From Utricularia gibba (taxonomy: Eukaryota; Plantae; Magnoliophyta): 64,000 nucleotides of DNA. This document shows, one piece after another, positions 5,244-19,155 of the stretch. Made by a program: the position numbers and the translations under genes. The notes below the pieces were generated by a model. It did not search any database. It was not told where the DNA came from and saw nothing but the letters and a program-made list of their open reading frames with translations. The stretch lies in the NCBI GenBank assembly GCA_002189035.1, contig NEEC01000016.1:496001-560000 (forward strand), in the 5' to 3' direction. The first letter of the stretch is position 1. Every line of letters starts with the position of its first letter.

Positions 5244-6035
5244 GTTTGCAAGGCTCTTCGATTTTCTTTTCTTGAGGCTTTTTTCTAGGAAAAATTGCTG
5301 GATCAGCTGGCTTGCGCTTCCTTCCTGTTAGGCCATTATATATTTGTTGTTGCTGTTGTTGTAGAGCAAGCAAGTTGAAGCGATCTTATTTCTGTACTGA
5401 ATCATGGCTCCTGCTTAGTCATTTATCAAGATGGTTATTATTAGTTCTAATTTTTAATATTTTTTCTCTGCCCCGTTTTCTTCTCTTCTCCCACATGTTC
5501 TTGTGCTCGCTTCTCATCAACCTGCTTTGAGATTAGTAGTAAATGCGTTTACCGCAGACATGAAGTACACAGATCATCCCCTGGACTGTAAATGATGTAT
5601 ACTGTACGGTCATCATCACTTATCCCCCACCCTGAACATCATCCATGGCTAACTTTTTCAACGTTCCAGATTCCGCTGCCTGACGGCGATTGAAGTTTGT
5701 CTTTGGTGGATGATCAATGAATGCTTTTATCTCCAGAATAAAATACTGTTTCCAGGTTCCCCACACTTACATATTGCATTATTTGATGGCGACATGGAGT
5801 TTAACAGCTGGAGGAAGAAACTTGGAGGAAATTTTGACCAAGGGTGAAATGGAGATGCGAAGGTGACCAACCAGCAAAAATCAGAAGTTCTGGTCAAATC
5901 ATCGACCGGTCCTTCTTCTTCCATGCGGTTTTGTATACAGGCACCTTCATCGCTCCTTCTTTGACTTTCCTCTGAGAAGTATCAGAGGTCGCTTAGTACA
6001 GAGTGGAAAGGGATCACTTCGAGTTTGCAGAGATC

Positions 6036-7787
6036 ATGGCTGTGAGTTCGCCTCCATATCCTTTACTGCAATAGTTGCTTTACTTTTCTAAAAAGCCTGT
6101 ATTTGTTTCTCATCACTATCTTACTTGGAGTATTGCGTTTTATGTACATGTAATCTATAGCTGCGAACTAGTTCTGTTGTATAGATGTGTGTTCACTGCA
6201 GATTGTGATGATTTTGGTTTAACAAGCATTTTGATGTACCTATTTTAATTCGCTGCTGTATACAATCCTACATGTCTTTGCATCCCGTATGTTGTTTCTG
6301 CAGAGGCATGATAAACCAGAGTGGGGTGTGTCGGCAGTCCTAAAGAGAAACATAAATCCAGATGGGCCAAAGGGCAGTCCTGAAATGTCCCCTGCTCCAC
6401 CAAGAGTCATACAAGAGGAATCACAGAGAAGAGGGCTATCCAACCCTTCCTCAGGAAGAGGAGGTCAGGGAGGAAATGGTGGCCTGCAGCAGCCTCCAGT
6501 CCAACAGAGGGTTAGAAAACCCTCGGCGTACTGCCCCTATGAGCAGCTGCCTGCATCTTCCGGAAGACCAGGTGCAAGGTCTGAACAAAGCTATGAGAGA
6601 TCACCTCTTCATCCCCAGCAGAGCCTTTCTTTGAGGCCTGGTGCGATCATGGATTGTGGCTTTGGAAAGTCCCCAGCTCATCCAATTCAAGCTCGTTCTC
6701 CGAAGGTGGATGCCAATTCCAATCAGAGGTTTGAAAGGTCTCCTCATCATCCGCAGCTGCAAGCTAGAACTGCGCGCCAAGGCAAAGATAAATCTTATGA
6801 AGGGGCCGGGGCAAAGCAAACCAGGGAAGATGCAGAAAGTGTAAGTTTTTTTTTTTTTTTTTTTGCTAGATTTGTAACAAGGATCACTTAATTGCTCCAT
6901 CATTTTGTAGTTGAAAAATCCCAAAATGTCCCCTGCTCAACCAAGAATCGTACAGGAGGAAACACTGGGAAGAGGGCTGTCCAAGCCTTCCTCAAGAAGA
7001 GGAGGTCGAAATGGTGGTTTGCAGCAGCCTCCGGTCCAACAGAGTGTTACTGACAGCTCCGCATACTCTCCGTATGAGCAGCTGCCTGCACCTTCCGGAA
7101 GACCAGGTGCAAGGTCTGAACAAAGCTATGAGAGATCACGTACTCATCCCCAGCCGAGCCATTCTCCGAGGCCGGGTGGCTTTGAAAAGTCCCCAGTTCA
7201 TCCAAATCAATCTCGTTCTCCCAAGGTGGATGCCAAGCCCAATCGCAGGTATGAAAGATCTCCTCTTCATCCCCAGCTGCGACCTAAAACTGTGCGCCAA
7301 GGCAAAGATAAAGATTATGAAGGGACTCGGGCAAAGCAAATCAAGCAAGATCCAGAAACTGTAAGTTTTTTTTTTTCCCCTTTATTCCTAGTTTTGTAAC
7401 AAGGATCCCTCAACTGCTCCATCATTTTGCAGCCTGATGAAGAGGTGGCTATTCCAGAATTCAGCACATTGAACAGAAAAGATTCCGAAAAGGTGTCCGA
7501 GATATTCGGTATAATTTTTAAATCAAGGCAGAATCCAAATCACCCTCTCCACACCAATCGCTCCAATCCTCCCTCAGAATCAAAGGTCAGTTCATCATCC
7601 CTTTGGCTTGAGTGAGAACACCAGTTCTTATTGAAAGTAGCCAGTTCCAACACCGTTCCTACTTTCTCCTCTTGAACTTGAGAAGCAGTACTGCGGCATT
7701 TAGCTTGTGTAAGATTCACTGTGCTCGAATTCAAGTGTGTTTGTCTCATGCCTCTTGCAGAAATCCTGGTGCTGCTTCCCCTGGTGA
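6036..7787 (+). CDS. RIN4: RIN4/NOI-family protein, highly diverged, ~390 aa; exons 6036-6041, 6304-6840, 6911-7360, 7433-7585, 7761-7787
   Basis: Diagnostic 6-nt first exon ATGGCT|GTGAGT; MARHDKPEWG...INPDGP N-terminus; repeated ERSPLHP motifs; phase-0 intron before PDEEVAIPEF (cf. PEKVTVVPKF); last exon KSWCCFPW* (CCF palmitoylation anchor); adjacent to CDC45. Confidence 0.8.
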
Positions 7788-8179
7788 TGCCGCTGCTCCT
7801 CACAATGAGTTGTCCAGAACGCACGTGCACGTGGACTTTACTACAGAACTTATAACCAGTCTGAGATTGAATTTGAAATTTGATTTTTTTCAGTAATTTT
7901 GATAAAAAAAATCCTAAATTTAAAAATGTTAATTTAGATAATTATTTCAATGTTTCAAAGGATATTAATTTATTGTAAAAGGAAATTGTAGATGAATTTA
8001 AAAATATTGATTATAATTTAATAAATAATTGCAATATTCTTTTTATTGGAGGAATAAATAAATGTAGTTTAATTAGTTAAATCTGAAATATGGCAAGAGA
8101 AAAAAAAAAAAAAAGCAGCCAATAATGGAAAGGGCTTAACTGTCTTTTCCATGCATGATCCAAAAGCCAGGAGTCAAAG

Positions 8180-8187
8180 GCGCCAAT
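8180..8187 (-). promoter_or_regulatory. E2F-type site (ATTGGCGC on minus strand) upstream of CDC45
   Basis: GCGCCAAT fits the WTTSSCSS consensus ~430 nt upstream of the CDC45 ATG; replication-initiation genes are typical E2F targets. Motif match only. Confidence 0.45.
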
Positions 8188-8611
8188 TCTTGGCGGTGGT
8201 TGCAAATTTTCGAAAGTGTGCTGCCCTCTTCAAATCTTGAAACTTTGAAGCCCACCAAATTGGTTTGAGCATCCGATCTGCTCGGTGCCCATTTAGTTTT
8301 CCTCCAGTCGAAGAGAAGCCGCTGTGGAAACGGAACGGCGGAGGGCGGCAGGACCCCAATTCTACTCTGTCAAAACAATTTTCAGGTGTACCATTCACAA
8401 TTTCTCCTCTTTGCTACTAATTATGAGGAGCGAGCTTGAACCCATCTCAGAATTTGTGTCTGGGTTCATGTTCAATCGTAATTTAGTCTCGGAGATGGGT
8501 GCTAATATATCCCGAGTTGAGATAGCATTGTTTCATGAGTGCTTGTGAAGATTTACAGCACTAATATTTGGTCTTTTGTTGGGATTACGTTTTTTGTTCT
8601 CGGGTGTTGGT

Positions 8612-10408
8612 ATGGTTAGGGAGCAGAGTGTTGACTCCTTTTACTCTCGTTTGAGGGCGTCTGCGCTAGCCTCTGCTTCATCTGCACCTCTGTTGATTTT
8701 CCCTTCAACTTCAGATGTTGATTCTTTATGTGCCTTGAAGATTATTGGGCATGTTCTGGAATCTGATTCAATTAGATATGCTTGTTATCCAGTTTCTAGT
8801 TTTAAGGAAATACACAACTGTACTGAGCCTTACTTGAGTTCGTCTCTGGATGAACCCCTAACCATTTTGTTAATAAACTGGGGTTGCCATAGGGATTTGA
8901 GAAAAGAACTGGGTATCGGTTCAGCAGCTTGTGTTTTTGTTGTTGATAGTCATAGGCCTATTCACTTGCATAACCTAAGCAGCAAAAATGATCGGATTGT
9001 AGTTCTTTATACTAGGGATGATGAACTGCAGGCAGATTTGTCATACGATTTTGATGTGTCAACTCTAGCTAATGAAAGTAATTTGGATATTGATGATGAA
9101 GTTGAGGATGATTTAGACAGCGATGATGAAAATGGAAGTGAAAGTGATGATGACGATGGAGGAGGAGGTAGAAGAAGTAAAAGGAGGAGGGTTTCAGATG
9201 AAAATGAGACAGATAACGTAAAAGTTTACAGGAAACTGAAGAGAAGTTACTATCACTTGGGGACTTTTCATGGGAAGCCATCAGGATGTTTAATGTATGA
9301 TTTATCTCATTTGCTGAGGAAGAACAAGAATGAGTTGCTTTGGCTAGCTTGTGTCGCTTTAACTGATCAATTTGTGCATGAAAGGTTGACTGATGAGAGA
9401 TACCAGGCTGGAGTAATGGAACTTGAGCAGTATATCAATAGTTCTGGAAACGCTGATGCTGCAACTCATGTCACGCTCAAGGATGGCACGAAGTTTAGCT
9501 TGCCCGACACTTCCAGAATTGCTTATGAAGATGAGCCAAGGCTTATGTTATTGCAGGAGTGGAACTTGTTTGATTCAATGCTCTGCTCATCTTACATTGC
9601 CACCAAATTGAAGACATGGAGTGCTAATGGTTTGAAAAGGATGCAGTTACTTTTAGCTCGCATGGGATTTGCTAGAGAAGAATGTAAACAAAAATACCAA
9701 TATATGAGTGTTGAGATAAAACGAAGAATGAAGGATATGTTTGAACAATACCTACCTGAGTTTGGATTGACAGATTTCTATTACAGAGGTTTTTTGCTAT
9801 GGTATGGTTATAGTTCAAAGATTTCAGCTGCTGATGTTGTATATGGAGTTTCTGCCTTGTTAGAGTCGTCTGTTGAAGTGGATGGAGCTTCTTGTTCGAA
9901 GCAATTTGGTGTTGCTTATGATGCTTTATCAATAAACAAACTTGAGAAACTGGAAATTGGAATGAAGCAGGCCATCATGGTACAAAGAGCTGTTCTTAGA
10001 CAAGGAAGCATGGCCATAACAAAGAAGGGGTTCATTAGAAGTGGCAGCAAGTTTCGGTGGGTGAAGCTGGAAGACTCTGCAGACACAAAGCTCTTGTGTC
10101 ACCCTCAGGCTTTGACCAAATTTGGCTACTTTCTCTTTGATGCTCTCCAACAGAAAGGTGCAAGAATGAAACCACTTATATGTGTTTGCTACATTGGGGA
10201 ACAGAAGAAGAATGTTCTTATCGTTGGACTTTGTGGGAAGCCACGGCTTGGTGCAGTTCAAGGGAATGCATTTGGAGTCTCGCTGAGAAGTGCTGCTCAG
10301 GAGATTGGAGCAGAGTATTTCCATGAGCTGTTCGAATCATCATGGATAATTTTAGAAGCAGTGGCTGTGAACTCATTCATGATAAGATTGACAGACAAAC
10401 TTCTCTGA
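8612..10408 (+). CDS. CDC45: Cell division control protein 45, single coding exon, 598 aa
   Basis: MVREQSVDSFYSRLR...DVDSLCALKI...INWG...VVDSHRPIHLHN, acidic loop, C-terminal GNAFG...FHELFESSWI; uninterrupted ORF. Confidence 0.96.
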   Translation: MVREQSVDSFYSRLRASALASASSAPLLIFPSTSDVDSLCALKIIGHVLESDSIRYACYPVSSFKEIHNCTEPYLSSSLDEPLTILLINWGCHRDLRKELGIGSAACVFVVDSHRPIHLHNLSSKNDRIVVLYTRDDELQADLSYDFDVSTLANESNLDIDDEVEDDLDSDDENGSESDDDDGGGGRRSKRRRVSDENETDNVKVYRKLKRSYYHLGTFHGKPSGCLMYDLSHLLRKNKNELLWLACVALTDQFVHERLTDERYQAGVMELEQYINSSGNADAATHVTLKDGTKFSLPDTSRIAYEDEPRLMLLQEWNLFDSMLCSSYIATKLKTWSANGLKRMQLLLARMGFAREECKQKYQYMSVEIKRRMKDMFEQYLPEFGLTDFYYRGFLLWYGYSSKISAADVVYGVSALLESSVEVDGASCSKQFGVAYDALSINKLEKLEIGMKQAIMVQRAVLRQGSMAITKKGFIRSGSKFRWVKLEDSADTKLLCHPQALTKFGYFLFDALQQKGARMKPLICVCYIGEQKKNVLIVGLCGKPRLGAVQGNAFGVSLRSAAQEIGAEYFHELFESSWIILEAVAVNSFMIRLTDKLL

Positions 10409-10821
10409 AATTCCCCGTGGATTATTCACAAAGACTAATGTGAACTTCTAGAACAGGTTGACTGAAAGATGAGATTTTCCATCTCCCTTGTTTCAAAACA
10501 TTGAGTTTACTTTTATTTAATGTACCATTCTACACTTTCCTAATTTTGCTGTCATCGTAGCTTGAACTTGTAAATGTATGCATTGCGATTCTACTTTGTA
10601 ACTAAGAACCAAATCATTCTCCATGTATTGGTTGCCTTTGATGATGCTAATGCCATGAACTCAACTTGGAATTACAACCTGTCAATGCATGAGATCAAGC
10701 AGCTTGAGAATGTACTGCAACAACCAAAACTATGAAGCTAGAATCGTGTAACTGATGCCTGTGTAGTCGAATTAAAATAGAACAGGTTAAGTTAACATGG
10801 GAAGTGATCTGGTCTGCTGCA

Positions 10822-12348
10822 TCAGCAGGCTGATATCATGTCATTTGCTTCATCTTCTGAAGGCAAAAAACAAGCATTATTTTCCTTGTCTCCCTCCCAA
10901 GGACTGTCGTTGAACTTTTTCACTCTTCTCCTCTGGCTCTCTGTAAAATCACCCAAACAGCTTACACATCGTTCCCATATACAAAGAACATGTGACAATC
11001 GAGTAAAGGCAAGTTCTTTGAATGACATTCAGAAGGGTAGTGAAAACATGCAGTAGTTTGTCTCACTCTTGCTGTTGATTGCCAAACGTGTCATTGCTAA
11101 AAACTCATCCCAGCTGAACTTGCTTAGTTCCTGCTTTTCCTCCTCGGAGAGTTCAAAATTCGGCTCCCTCCCACACATGAATGCGGCCCTGCAGATCGAA
11201 GAGAAGCGCAGTCTTTGGTTGAACATGAAAAGTCTTGTGAAAATCACGTTTGAGAAAAGGGGTAAGAGAACAAGACCTATCATACAAACGAGCAGCCTCC
11301 TCTTGGGATCTAACAGTTCCCAGATGGATCTGTTTTTTGTCCACTTTGATAGCAGCTTGCCATTTCAAGTTCTTGAAATATACTCCTCTCATGATACATG
11401 GTTCCTGGTTATCGATATGCTTTCGCCGGTGCCGCTTTCTTCTCTTTACCTCTGGAAAATAAAAGAAAGAGAGCACACATACTTCTAAGAATTCTCGCAC
11501 AGCACAAGCTTATAGTGAAAAAACCACTAACCAGAGAACTGTTGCACTACTTGCTCTTTAGATGAAGACGAGGCACTAACATTTGATGAATGCACTCCAT
11601 TTTCTGAAGCGGCTTCCTAAATGAACAAGGAATGAACAACTCTTTAGTACATATTCTGCACTTTTATGGTCATTCAAGCGTCCTTTCACAAATGAATCCG
11701 ATGCAGAGTGAAATGCAGCAATGCTATGCAAACCTTACAGTGCTATCTGACAAATGTGGCTTCAAACAGCAAGCACGGGCAGAACACAAAGCTAGAGGAT
11801 GCACTAATGGCATTAGTAAACCCATGCTCACTTCCTTTGCGTTGAAAACCCATCAAAATCCAGTTACCACATGGTTCAGTAGGGCAGGTATAACAGGGGC
11901 AAACGATCTAGACAAGTGGGATAGGTTTCTGCTCCCAATGCAACAAATGTAATGAATTTTAACAGTAGCACAAGAGGAATTACTCATAGAGTAGCCTCAA
12001 GAAGCATGATTCAGAACGCCATAAAAATGTAATATGCATTCACGACAGGGTGCGAGTGTGGCTTTTAACACTCATGGAGAGGAGCATAAATCTAGAAGCA
12101 TGAACAGGAATTGTAAAAGAAGCTTACTTCTTTTGGCTTGAATTCATATTCTGAATGAGGATGCAAATTGAGTGATCTGCTCTCCTCAGTACTATCTTCC
12201 TTCTTCAAAGACTTCTGCTCTACAAAATCACAAGTAAAACAACATTTAGCAGATGAGCCAAAGTGTCAGTTATCCACATTGCAGTGGCAGATCAGAAAGT
12301 AATACCAGCGCATGATGCTAAAAGCTTGCGTCTTCGTATGCTTACCAT
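10822..12348 (-). CDS. Soloist-type AP2/ERF transcription factor (At4g13040-like), multi-exon
   Basis: Start MVSIRRRKLLASCA; AP2 domain RRKRHRRKH...MRGVYFKNLKWQAAIKVDKKQIHLGTVRSQEEAARLYDR|AAFMCGREPNFELSEEEKQEL; last exon ends ...NDMISAC*. Confidence 0.88.
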
Positions 12349-14338: not shown

Positions 14339-16603
14339 TCACCTGTGTTTTAGTGTGATGAGGGACATTGGTCTCTCGTAGCCACCTTCCTTGTCCTTTT
14401 CTTGCCGCTTTGGTTTTCCTGCATTTCTGGGCTCTGGCTTCCAGCATGCGTTGATCAGGGATTCACCTAACAACTGGACAATGCTGGTGGACATTGTCTC
14501 AGCTTTCTCGACGAAAGGGAACCTTTCCTCCTCCAACTGGTTGGATAACCATAAGTACATGGACAAAACAAGATACCTCAACTCAAGGTCCAAAAGCTCG
14601 GTATCGTTGCGAGCAGCGCCTCTGGGCATGCCCATGGCAATGGAAACTGGTTGCTTCTGTGCATACGAAGAAGCAAACTTTTGAAGATGATACATTGCTT
14701 TGGGGTCCCTTGTGTTTACTGGAGCAAAGCAAAAATTGAAGCGGTCATGTAGAGATAATCCTGGTATTCGCTCCAACATGTTAGCAATCTTTCGAATGTG
14801 TAAGTTCTGGCATAGGAAATAAGAACCATCAACCTTGCAGCTGTCACTGAATTTCTCGAGAATCTTTGCAAACCTCATGTCTGGAAGCTGGGATGCAAAG
14901 AGCTCGACCTGCCCAAATGCAGGAAACAGCCCAACTCTCTTGACTTCATCAAAAGGTTTCTTTAGGCATTCAATCAGGTAGTCCAAATCTTCAAGATGAA
15001 GGGTGGTGGTTAAACCATCAGGATAACGGCTTCCTCTTCGACCTGCTCTCCCGGCGATCTGCTTCACCAGTGATGCAGGGACCGGGACGATTGAATCACC
15101 ATTGTATTTAGAGAGGCTGTAGAAGACAATTCTTCGAATATTTAAATTCAAACCCATTCCAACTGCATCACTTGCAACTAGAACATCAAACTCATTGTCT
15201 TGATTGTTGAATAGAGATGCTTGATGACGACGAGTCTCTGGTGGCAAGGCGCCATATATTATGCAACAACGATGGCTGGTTAACTTTTCAATCACCAACT
15301 TCACTTCAAATATTTCTTTTCTCGAAAATGCAACAATGCAGTCCCCAGACTTCACATTTTTCAGGTCCCCTAGAAGGGTCTTTGCTTCAACAACAAGAGG
15401 CTTAAATCTCTCATAGTGATGTTCAACTAGTTCATCCCCAGTATCAGCACAAATCTTCCTTATTATATTCAAAACGCTAGGATCACCACACACATGTATC
15501 TCATCAGCCTTCAGTCCCAGCAGTGCTCGAGTCCAAGCATAGCCTCTGCATGAATCAGCCATCATCTGAATCTCGTCAATCACAGCCACATCATACAGCT
15601 CATCCGTCGAGACCATCTCAACAGTACAGGCAACATGACTAGAGAAGGGAAAAAACTTCTTTTCTTGGCCAGTAAGAAGACTGCAATAAACACCCTTTGC
15701 ATTTACCCTATCAAAAACCTCCATTGCCAGCAACCTCAGAGGGCTGCAATACACACCTTTCTTTGCTTCCATAAATCTCTGCAGCGCATTATATGTTTTT
15801 CCACTATTCGTTGGCCCACAATGATAAATTATCTTCCGTTTCATCGCCCTTGCAAACGGGAACCAAGTGTGAGGCTTAGTCATGTCTGCAGACTCTACCA
15901 ATTTCCTGAATCTCTTGATTTCATCAGGAAACTCGTCTATACAAAACTCTACAAAAATGGGGAACAAAAACATATCAGCCTGACGACCAGGTCCTAGAGA
16001 CAGCATATACTTAACCAATTCATTATTGCACCTCTTCAAGAAAAAACTGCCGAACTTCTGAGCTGCAAGAGGGAAAAATTGTGAGCCAATATAAGCAGCA
16101 AGTGCTTGGTTGGACGCCCAACCCGATTGGGAAAAACCTCGAAGTATCTGAATCAAAGTATCACGGTCACAAGATTCCTTTTTAGAAGAAGATGAGCCCT
16201 TAAGCTCTTTATATACTTCCACAGGATCTTGATTAGATATTTTGGAAAAATTCAATCCTCCCGCGGCTGGCCTTGGAGTCCCAATTCCAGACTCGTTAAT
16301 TTCAACAGACTCCGCTACAAGTTCACAACTTTCAGGGGATTCTAAAATTGGTTTTTCGTTCTCCAAGACAGTGCAGAAAAATTGCTTGTGTAACGTACCA
16401 TGTAAACCGCCAAACTGCGCCCGCGGGGTAGAGCAAATAGAACGCAAGTCCGAAAATGAAGAGGAAGGGAAAGAGCAAAGCAAATATCTTGAAGAGCCGG
16501 AATCATGCAAAAAACGACAGGGATGCACACTTCTACATACCAATATACTCTTATTCTTACAAAAATATACATGAAGCAGCCGTCTTGCTGCCCCTTTTCC
16601 CAT
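14339..16603 (-). CDS. SUV3L: Mitochondrial SUV3-like DExH RNA helicase (DExH18 type), single exon, ~754 aa
   Basis: GPTNSGKT Walker [31 protein letters not shown] and QIAGRAGR motifs; N-terminal presequence-like [10 protein letters not shown]. Confidence 0.93.
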
Positions 16604-18502
16604 CGTAACTCCTAACACAAGAAAACGGAGACGACAACGATACCTAGTCTTCAAACCCCAAAGAGGTGGGAGGGGAGAGAGAACGAAGCTTTCAACCCTG
16701 CCGTAAAAAGAATGAAGAAATACAGCCCATAGGAGACAGCATGGCCTGGTAATGAAAACTCCTCCACTAACTCGCCGGAGCGACCATTTCTCGGCCGCGA
16801 AAAAACGGTCTGTTTAAAGGCCATCGGTAGGGATGCAAGTCGTGCCCTAAGAATGCCCGATGGGCCAGCTCTGTTAGTATTTTCAGTATATAAAAAAATC
16901 AAATACTTAAGAACGATTTGATTTAAAATGAAAAATAAATTACAATCTAATTTAATTAATATTAATAAATAGGATAATATTCACATTTAAAATAATATAT
17001 TTGACTAAAAATAATTAAAACGTGATGAAATTTGAATATTCATATAAAAATATAAAAGAAATATTAATTTTCATGATATTCCAAAATATGAATAAGATTA
17101 TCAAATTCATATTTTTATAATTTAAATTCTTACTAAATAATAGCTTCCAAATTTTAACATTTATATCAAATAAAATATTTCATTTAATTTATATCAAATT
17201 CATACAATTAAGTACTATTACACTCTTATTGAATTTCAATTTTACATACACAATATTTTTGGTACGTTAAAAGTTTATTCTTACCAACTTATAACGAGTT
17301 ACGAAACACTTTCATGACCTAATGTGATAAATTTGAAATGAACTTCATGATCAACTCAGAATGAGTTTCGAAATGAAGCATACATATTTTAAATTTGATC
17401 TAATAAGACTATACTCATTTCGTAAACAATTTGATCTTAATAATAAAACTTTCATGAATGATTTCAAGAATATGAAATTTTTCAATGATAAATATGAATA
17501 CATAATATAACATACAATAGCACGAGGGAAATGAAACGTGTTAGATGTAGAAAAGTAAATAGAGGAAATGAGTATTGAGAAAAATCAACTTTAATATATA
17601 AACGAATAGTTAATAATATATCATCTACTATAAAGAATTTAAATTCAACTATAAGTGCTATCTTATGTTGCGTACGACTAATATACAGTATTTGCATAAT
17701 CAGTTTATCATATTTTGATCAAACGCAAAAAGGTTGAGATAGATTATGTGCTCAATGGAAAATGTGAGAATAGTCGAAATATATTGCATAATAAATATAA
17801 TAAAAAAATATAAATATTATCTCATACATCATATTCATACTCTTGATTATATAGAATCAAAAAAATAATTAACGTTTTAAACAATATGGATTCTCGTCAC
17901 TATTAGAAAAAGTATGATTTATGTGTTACTAGTGGATATTAATATGAATAAATAATAATATTTAATAAGTAAAACTCGTATCATGAATAATTATTCTATT
18001 AAATAAGTATTATTTAGATTTATTAATGCTAATATATCTAGTTATTTTATTTAAACAATATTGAAAGATCAATAATAATAATAATATCATCGTATTGTAC
18101 GACAGCAGCAGCTCCTAGGATTGTGAAGGCGCCAACTGTTTCGACATGGATGAGGGGTTTTGTCGGTACCTGATACGCGGGATATACCCACTGCTTTCCC
18201 ACTTCCTTTTCTTTTTCTTTATTTTTTATTTTTTTTTATTTTTCCCATGGTATTACAATTTGTTCGGATTTAAGGAAAATAAAAATGGAAAAGTACACGC
18301 GTCAAAACATGACTCGTCCTTCTAGAAAACTCCGACGCTTTTACGTCTCTGGGTCGGCACGCCGGAATGGGAGAAGAGAAATATCCGGGAATTAGGAATG
18401 GATATATAGCGTCATTGCACTCGTCAGCATCCCCTCCTACAAAAACCGGCGGAGAAAATCTCCCAACATTTCAAATTTGTTGATTCAACTGGAAATTCTC
18501 TA

Positions 18503-19155
18503 ATGTCAATGGCGTGCAACGTCGCCCCGAACCCTAATTCACCCGTTTTCGTCCTTTCCAGCTCCAGTCGAGCCGCGAAGGCTACCAATGTCTGCTCCGT
18601 TTCCTTCCCTGCCGTAGCCGGAAAGCGGAGCATCCACCAACACGCATTTAGAGTGCGGCGGCCTATGATCGTGGCTTCTTACGCGCCACCGCGGAGCGAG
18701 GAGTCGCTGTACCAACTACTCGGGATTTCGGAAACGGAGAGCAGCCCCTCCGACATCAAGAAGGCGTTCAAGAGAATGGCGATGAAATATCATCCCGACG
18801 TCTCTCCTCCGGACCGCGTCGAAGAGAACACCAAGAGGTTCGTGATGGTGAAGGAAGCGTACGAGACTCTGTCGAATCCGCAACAGAGAGCTCTGTACGA
18901 TCAGGATCTGGCTCACGGATCTCGGTTCGGGTTCCCGCACAGGAAAAATCACCATTATTCTCAGGTATGCCTCTATTTCGATCCTATTTCCATCCCATGG
19001 CCTGGATTTGGCGATTAATGTATTGAAATTCATGGAATCTGCAGAGGACGGAAGAAGCAGGGGACTGGAAAACCAGGTGGCAATCTCAACTCGATGGATT
19101 GAAACGCCGGAGTGCCGTTCGCGAGGCTTCCGGAAGAAGACGAAACAAACCGTAA
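18503..19155 (+). CDS. J20: Chloroplast J-domain chaperone J20-like; exons 18503-18966 and 19045-19155
   Basis: Ser-rich transit peptide, J domain with KYHPDVSPPDRVEE...EAYETLS; second exon RTEEAGDWKTRWQSQLDGLKRRS resembles the J20 C-terminus. Confidence 0.85.

Follow-up and report, generated by a model that had tools for sequence, protein, structure and literature searches.

As a guarded hub of plant immunity RIN4 is a textbook case, and the locus described here raises the question of what such a protein can still be when the motifs by which it is targeted and guarded are no longer recognizable. The window, by which we mean the whole stretch of 64,000 nucleotides (nt) of Utricularia gibba that was analyzed (contig NEEC01000016.1, positions 496,001 to 560,000, forward strand), contains on its plus strand, at positions 6036-7787, a five-exon gene that a preliminary description made from the letters alone had read as a rewired RIN4. 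We conclude that this gene is RIN4's positional orthologue, because CDC45 microsynteny, the same exon plan and significant profile similarity coincide in it. It is transcribed, spliced as predicted and polyadenylated, and its amino-acid sequence evolves in a near-neutral manner with the reading frame maintained. The reading that we favor, and hold to be probable, is that of a membrane-tethered, disordered RIN4 in which the functions of both NOI domains, the N-NOI and the C-NOI, are relaxed or lost.

A RIN4 orthologue beside CDC45

The coding sequence of 1173 nt specifies a product of 390 amino acids (aa), which starts with MA and, across the first exon junction, RHDKPEWGVS, and which ends in KSWCCFPW. 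All four introns are GT..AG and in phase 0, and no start is possible before the ATG at 6036, because the nearest upstream in-frame stop lies at 5994. The intact frame of about 390 codons with good splice sites that had been claimed from the letters is thereby borne out, the predicted joints being present in transcripts as well (see below). The features of the gene and of its downstream neighbor are as follows.

6036-6041, plus strand: exon 1, a micro-exon that encodes 'MA' and includes the start codon; the same micro-exon, ATGGCT followed by GT, is found in Sesamum RIN4
6304-6840, plus strand: exon 2 (residues 3-181), the N-NOI remnant and then unit 1 of the central-region repeat
6313-6333, plus strand: N-NOI remnant, KPEWGVS in place of VPKFGNW, from the MAFFT alignment with 70 complete RIN4s; no Pfam match
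6378-6910, plus strand: tandem repeat unit 1, the tail of exon 2 and intron 2
6580-6615, plus strand: best-kept central motif, SEQSYERSPLHP, near-identical to the canonical SEQSFERSPLHP
6911-7360, plus strand: exon 3 (residues 182-331), with T331 as its last residue; T331-P332 is the S141-P equivalent
6919-7432, plus strand: tandem repeat unit 2, exon 3 and intron 3
7433-7585, plus strand: exon 4 (residues 332-382), which holds the degenerate C-NOI and whose Sesamum orthologue reaches 78 bits with PF05627
7451-7474, plus strand: IPEFSTLN in place of VPxFGxWD, the AvrRpt2 site being broken by G to S and W to L
7493-7507, plus strand: VSEIF, the best-aligned remnant of [YF]THIF by register scan and HMMER alignments
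7761-7787, plus strand: exon 5, KSWCCFPW and the stop codon, a putative C-terminal acylation (anchor) motif
7788-7891, plus strand: 3' untranslated region (UTR) up to the poly(A) site
8612-10408, plus strand: CDC45, the intronless downstream neighbor and synteny anchor, 598 aa, with PF02724 relatives at 84% identity, 825 bp past the RIN4 stop codon

The order and strand of the two genes match those of Sesamum, where a PF05627 gene (L001, 5718-8363, plus strand, 254 aa) is followed by CDC45 (10001-11788, plus strand), so that in both genomes RIN4 lies directly 5' of CDC45 and in the same orientation; past this pair, no synteny was found in the 21.8 kb of the Sesamum locus. Locus tags of RIN4 and CDC45 are also adjacent in Paulownia, Buddleja, Penstemon, Nyssa, Camellia, and Anisodus, and the Arabidopsis gene numbers are AT3G25070 for RIN4 and AT3G25100 for CDC45. 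The closest matches of the window CDC45 are all from Lamiales (Sesamum, Handroanthus, Buddleja, and Paulownia, 82-84%; 84-85% identity to the Sesamum locus CDC45), and a maximum-likelihood tree of CDC45 places it inside the non-Oleaceae Lamiales on the longest terminal branch (0.22 versus a median of 0.049, about 4.5-fold). On these CDC45 results, a non-seed plant as the source was rejected. As a side observation, the NCBI product names of two Capsicum annuum proteins are exchanged, P0077, a CDC45-domain protein, being named 'RPM1-interacting protein 4-like' and P0208, a PF05627 protein, 'cell division control protein 45-like', which is probably an annotation slip from the adjacency of the two genes.

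The exon plan points the same way. Canonical RIN4 genes have introns before the N-NOI, before the C-NOI and just before the C-terminal cysteines (Afzal et al., PMC3661340). The Sesamum gene has three introns, all in phase 0, with the ATGGCT micro-exon, an exon 2 that starts at RSNVPKFGNW, a phase-0 intron in front of PDKGAAVPRFGEW and a final exon that ends in KCCFPWW. The window gene has the canonical plan, and its sole extra intron is the tandem-duplicated pre-C-NOI intron. An internal tandem duplication (6378-6910 versus 6919-7432; repeat search, families D1-D4) gave rise to two units of 83-87% identity that differ by two indels of 6 and 15 nt, both in frame; intron 2 is a duplicate of intron 3 (the copies are 87% identical), and the ancestral gene therefore had three introns. 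The RIN4-type architecture that had been recognized from the micro-exon, the phase-0 intron before the C-NOI and the terminal WCCFPW is thus present, and the CDC45 synteny adds orthology to it.

At the level of protein similarity, phmmer with the 390-aa model against 120 RIN4 homologues gave as top matches the CDC45-linked P0127 (Paulownia Pfo_007509, 36.8 bits) and P0219, while a hidden Markov model of 70 complete RIN4s scored the window protein at 32.1 bits compared with 6.6 or less for 1000 shuffles, in an alignment that is collinear from the central region through the final residue. By tblastn, exon 2 of Sesamum RIN4 matches window positions 6352-6618 (E 5e-5), the block RPGARSEQSYERSPLHP of the window protein nearly matches the canonical RPSAGSEQSFERSPLHP, and the canonical C-NOI exon can be aligned with exon 4 over the full length.

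These results have to be set against a series of searches that returned nothing. Pfam found no family at E<=10 on any of the three large exons (2, 3, and 4), where the PF05627 gathering score is 20.3 bits and the controls scored 78 bits (Sesamum C-NOI exon), 20.5 bits (Sesamum N-NOI exon) and 81.4 bits (P0127). With exon 4 as query, the ESM Atlas gave no usable match and a PDB sequence search only a chance match to CFAP143 (E 0.7). With exon 2, a word-indexed protein search that covers proteins of 98-313 aa only was blank, and exhaustive HMMER against 1.84 billion representatives gave 0 matches, so that even the window protein itself was missing; this last blank says little on plants because the gene itself is not in that library. 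The missing Pfam match and the two blanks for exon 2 in very large protein collections are what could be expected of an unrelated Pro/Ser-rich gene whose C-terminal CCFPW arose by chance, and yet such a gene would have to share by accident the CDC45 synteny, an identical exon plan, the collinear profile alignment (32 bits versus 6.6 or less for shuffles), and a near-identical SEQS[FY]ERSPLHP block. We consider this origin extremely improbable, and an unrelated gene with a convergent C-terminus was rejected on the Sesamum synteny and the RIN4 profile score.

NOI motifs lost and other motifs kept

Given that the gene is RIN4 by position and descent, what has become of its defining motifs? Neither PxFGxW nor [YF]TxxF is found anywhere in the window protein. 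Two PxFGxW motifs occur in 100 of the 120 asterid RIN4 homologues, all but two of which also have two [YF]TxxF; one PxFGxW occurs in 19 (15 short models of 171-221 aa, and four longer ones that are without the usual C-terminal Cys motif), and the one homologue that has none is an N-terminally truncated model. At the N-terminus VPKFGNW has become KPEWGVS and the next ~17-20 residues, with the PYTxxFxKAR core, are deleted, the MAFFT alignment picking up again at INPxxP; the replacement of PKFGNW by PEWGVS and the missing N-NOI core had already been noticed from the sequence, and the alignment with 70 RIN4s agrees with this. In the C-NOI, AAVPRFGEW reads VAIPEFSTL, and the stretch continues as IPEFSTLN ... 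EIFGIIFKSR, in line with what had been read there before. Since its exons have no PF05627 match, the protein is no longer a NOI-domain protein by the Pfam definition.

The consensus recognition sequence of AvrRpt2 is PxFGxW (10.1101/583054), and the two remnants are broken at different consensus positions, the N-terminal PEWGVS at F/W and the C-terminal PEFSTL at G/W. With both sites broken, the window protein should not be a substrate of the AvrRpt2 type, and we would expect AvrRpt2-type proteases to be unable to cut it. A precedent is NOI10, in which the site is absent and which is not cleaved by AvrRpt2 (10.1101/583054). Furthermore, a RIN4 that lacks both NOIs cannot suppress pattern-triggered immunity (PTI) (PMC6681865).

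The site of T166, the RIPK/AvrB Thr, is a different matter. The preliminary description had aligned T166 to Gly, and this does not stand: HMMER, MAFFT, and the register scan all favor the alignment of SEKVSEIFGIIFKSR with ADNYTHIFNKVREER, which puts T166 on Ser353. In the register scan VSEIF versus [YF]THIF scores 16, with I168 and F169 kept, compared with 4 for the ungapped register (T166 on Phe) and 5 for the register with T166 on Gly, which was rejected on that score; the Ser353 register implies a 3-residue deletion upstream. The core of the Y/FTxxF site is thus probably kept in the weakened form VSEIF, and with T166 on Ser353 the phospho-acceptor may survive.

Other parts of the protein have been retained more clearly. 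The terminal WCCFPW is kept (canonical proteins end in KKCCFPWW, RMKCCFPW, and similar) and exon 5 is unchanged in organism B, a close relative, so that the earlier claim of an intact C-terminal Cys/aromatic anchor motif holds. RIN4/NOI proteins are anchored at the plasma membrane through S-acylation of this Cys-Cys/aromatic motif, and by it the window protein would likewise be S-acylated and located there. Where exons 3 and 4 join, T331-P332 is an [ST]-P site equivalent to S141-P, and for SEQSYERSPLHP at 6580-6615 no differences are listed for organism B. Low-complexity, disorder-type composition prevails, with P, S, Q, E, K, R, G, and A making up 70% of the protein, and there are 13 Ser/Thr-Pro sites. 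The central ERSPLHP module, which corresponds to AtRIN4 S111/S116, has gone from one copy in canonical RIN4 to six here, three per repeat unit, in the form [E/G][R/K]S[P/R]xHP. S111 and S116 are among the conserved predicted phosphosites of RIN4 (PMC9514647).

The window protein can thus be compared with three kinds of NOI protein. It resembles the canonical RIN4 of Lamiales and Arabidopsis (Sesamum L001:5718-8363, P0127, and AT3G25070) in its position beside CDC45, in the MA micro-exon, the phase-0 introns before N-NOI and C-NOI and the final intron before the Cys motif, and in the SEQS[FY]ERSPLHP block, the junction [ST]P, the disorder-type composition, the PNHP/PKHP...K(K) tail, and the CCFPW end. 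It differs in having no PxFGxW at either end, no strict [YF]TxxF, a deleted N-NOI core, no match to PF05627 (78-81 bits in canonical proteins), six central motifs instead of one, an extra exon and intron by tandem duplication, and a length of 390 aa rather than ~250. NOI10 and NOI11 of Arabidopsis (At5g48657 and At3g07195) are Brassicaceae-specific two-NOI RIN4-like proteins that are C-terminally Cys-anchored, with a C-NOI that is without the AvrRpt2 site and T166 (PMC3661340, PMC9514647, 10.1101/583054). They share with the window protein the RIN4-like character, the Cys-anchored C-terminus and the missing C-NOI cleavage site; however, they are extra paralogues beside a canonical RIN4 and keep the N-terminal cleavage site and recognizable NOI domains, whereas the window gene, in a Lamiales genome, is the orthologue linked to CDC45 and has lost both sites. 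The short one-NOI proteins (PF05627) likewise carry a Cys/aromatic acylation motif at the C-terminus and are presumed to be tethered to the plasma membrane, but they combine a strong NOI domain with no long disordered spacer, and the window protein is the reverse, with spacer and anchor and no NOI.

Transcripts, reading frame, and rate of evolution

If the NOI signatures are gone, is the gene still in use? Public runs were screened for the 1752-nt stretch of the gene, and four were aligned to 5700-8200, namely X1, X5, and X6, which represent three studies of organism A, and X10, from organism B. The best five runs carry 0.56-0.72 of the sampled words, near the 0.67 that exons make up of the 1752 nt. 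In X1, X5, and X6, contigs contain the joints of 6041 to 6304, 7360 to 7433, and 7585 to 7761, the first appearing in X6 as 6041 to 6306 with two replaced letters and the last being listed as 7583 to 7759, with the cut placed two positions further right here; in the same three runs contigs pass from 6575-6833 through seven letters to 6911 onward, which is the exact splice of 6840 to 6911. Contigs of X10 show the joints of 7360 to 7433 and 7585 to 7761. A poly(A) run behind 7891 (loose end TAAAAAAAAAAAAAAAAA) terminates an X6 contig, and a minor contig retains intron 1. The absence of a transcript, which had been named beforehand as a result that would speak against a working gene, is thus not what is seen, since spliced contigs occur in three studies and X6 shows a poly(A) end.

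On the 5' side, transcript contigs reach at least 340 nt upstream of the start codon (5700-6035), and in X1 probably more than 800 nt; with eight upstream ATGs in 5700-6035, this could reflect a long 5' UTR with upstream open reading frames or an overlap with the transcript of the upstream gene.

The coding sequence itself has changed rapidly. The two repeat units differ by a synonymous divergence (dS) of 0.185 and a nonsynonymous divergence (dN) of 0.16, for a dN/dS of 0.86. Organisms A and B are separated by 22 nonsynonymous and 4 synonymous changes (21 and 4 when codons are counted), which correspond to a pS of 0.022, a pN of 0.037 and an omega (the nonsynonymous to synonymous ratio) of ~1.7; an omega of 0.2 is rejected (P = 3e-6), and the value is not significantly above 1 (P = 0.24). 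Replacements are also present among accessions within organism A. The window RIN4 is 36% identical to Sesamum RIN4, where ~60% would be expected, since taxa with equal CDC45 divergence (Camellia, Nyssa, and Anisodus) keep 60-63% identity; the acceleration is therefore gene-specific and adds to that of an already fast lineage. After diverging from canonical RIN4 the gene has exchanged about two thirds of its residues, and in doing so has acquired no stop and lost none of its splice sites. The probability of finding no stop is, for substitutions alone, 0.07 in the repeat unit and, at half the inter-repeat dS, 0.011 in the entire coding sequence.

Such rates invite the proposal that the changes were driven by selection, that is, that effectors aimed at the NOIs, whether AvrRpt2-like proteases or AvrB/AvrRpm1-like modifiers, favored the removal of their sites while the host function shifted elsewhere in the protein. 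Both cleavage sites are indeed altered at consensus positions, and the single C-terminal contig that can be compared between A and B shows 12 nonsynonymous changes and no synonymous one (P = 0.053 under neutrality), with a pN of 0.043 versus ~0.02 in the 3' UTR. However, the overall excess of replacements is not significant, as given above, the N-NOI core was removed altogether instead of being tuned, changes occur protein-wide with the spacer included, and no guard NLR (nucleotide-binding leucine-rich repeat receptor) or effector context is known for the host plant. We therefore regard adaptive escape as unlikely.

A more serious contender, to which we give a minor but real share of our belief, is that the gene is a dispensable relic, transcribed and open by chance and drifting toward a pseudogene as RIN4 has become unnecessary in the lineage, for instance through an earlier loss of guarding NLRs or partners. 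The dN/dS of 0.86 between repeats and of ~1.7 against organism B, with 0.2 rejected, is what it would predict, as are the five amino-acid replacements with no silent change in exon 4, the former C-NOI exon. In the bladderwort lineage, moreover, NDR1, EDS1/PAD4, and helper NLRs are reported to be lost and RIN4 to be 'retained' by BLAST (10.1101/572560). On the other hand, the frame has stayed open across the dS of 0.185 since the duplication, and both indels are in frame; so much of the protein has changed, and still no stop has appeared and no splice site has been lost; CCFPW and the first SEQSYERSPLHP have been kept while the NOIs, which are normally best conserved, decayed; and spliced, polyadenylated transcripts are found in three studies.

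Several further observations weigh against the retained scaffold that we favor, some of them directly in support of a relic. An X6 contig (depth ~20) carries an additional T after 6729 that converts AGG TTT GAA at 6729-6734 into AGG TTT TGA, with a premature stop near codon 145; it is not present in X1 or X5 and may be a natural truncating allele. A 3-nt in-frame deletion is listed at 7260, in the middle of codon S298, in X5 and X6, and in organism B the replacements S298F and H301Y destroy one ERSPLHP copy; since both affect the last copy, individual motif copies are expendable. The A versus B comparison was built on short Logan contigs, and organism B has two contig versions over 6434-6563 and 6996-7103, one the same as the window and the other 3-5% different, which may stem from two haplotypes, from homeologues or from a mixed sample, so that some of the differences may be allelic or paralogous. 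An omega near or above 1 is equally compatible with a dispensable gene. Finally, the existence of the protein and its membrane location are predictions from the transcript and the motif, and its non-cleavability is one from the AvrRpt2 consensus.

Taking these points together, the gene is the RIN4 orthologue of a fast-evolving Lamiales species with a compact genome; it has lost both NOI signatures and has kept the anchor motif, the S141-type T331-P332, an amplified ERSPLHP, and probably the weakened VSEIF. We propose that its most likely state would be that of a membrane-tethered, phosphorylatable disordered scaffold under weak constraint, in which the NOI-dependent roles, as effector target or guardee and in PTI suppression, would be relaxed or lost. 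The residual scaffold function, the loss of NOI-dependent activity, and the cause of the relaxation are our interpretation of these patterns. The preliminary description had spoken of a functional but rewired hub and not a pseudogene. Of this, the second part has the open frame, the in-frame indels, and the kept anchor in its favor, all of which argue against a dead gene; the rewiring fares less well, since the dN/dS of about 1, the lost motif copy, and the frameshift allele fit relaxed constraint at least equally, and a newly specialized hub is the less likely outcome.

Significance of a RIN4 without NOI signatures

The literature describes the NOI motifs, T166, and S141 as conserved from moss through to flowering plants (PMC3661340, PMC6681865, PMC9514647). 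A literature search for RIN4 in Lentibulariaceae or carnivorous plants gave only the preprint of Baggs et al., in which RIN4 is scored as conserved in all 18 species, and a search for RIN4 together with SPLH found no paper. The locus gives reason for caution here, in that presence/absence surveys by reciprocal BLAST can call RIN4 'conserved' even though its functional motifs are lost.

We suggest that the gene is a natural deletion experiment in which the NOI-dependent functions, namely effector cleavage, targeting by AvrB/RIPK, and PTI suppression, are separable from the remainder of the protein, and it draws attention to the unstudied ERSPLHP module. More tentatively, the host plant may have no NOI-competent RIN4 at all and would then be a natural 'NOI-less RIN4' angiosperm, a possibility that we rate as clearly short of even. 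If it were true, the role of RIN4 as guardee and effector target would be dispensable once the matching guards or partners have gone, and the plant would isolate a never-studied, NOI-independent core function, consisting of the anchor and the amplified ERSPLHP phospho-motif. Should the host prove to come from a lineage whose immune system is pared down, the NOI motifs of RIN4 would join the immune components that decay together.

Two further open reading frames of the window lie beyond CDC45. At 14339-16654 on the minus strand there is a single, apparently intronless frame of 771 aa that by eye is like SUV3-type mitochondrial RNA helicases (GPTNSGKT, DEIQM), and at 18503-19018 on the plus strand a frame of 171 aa has a J-domain-like KYHPD motif and a transit-peptide-like N-terminus.

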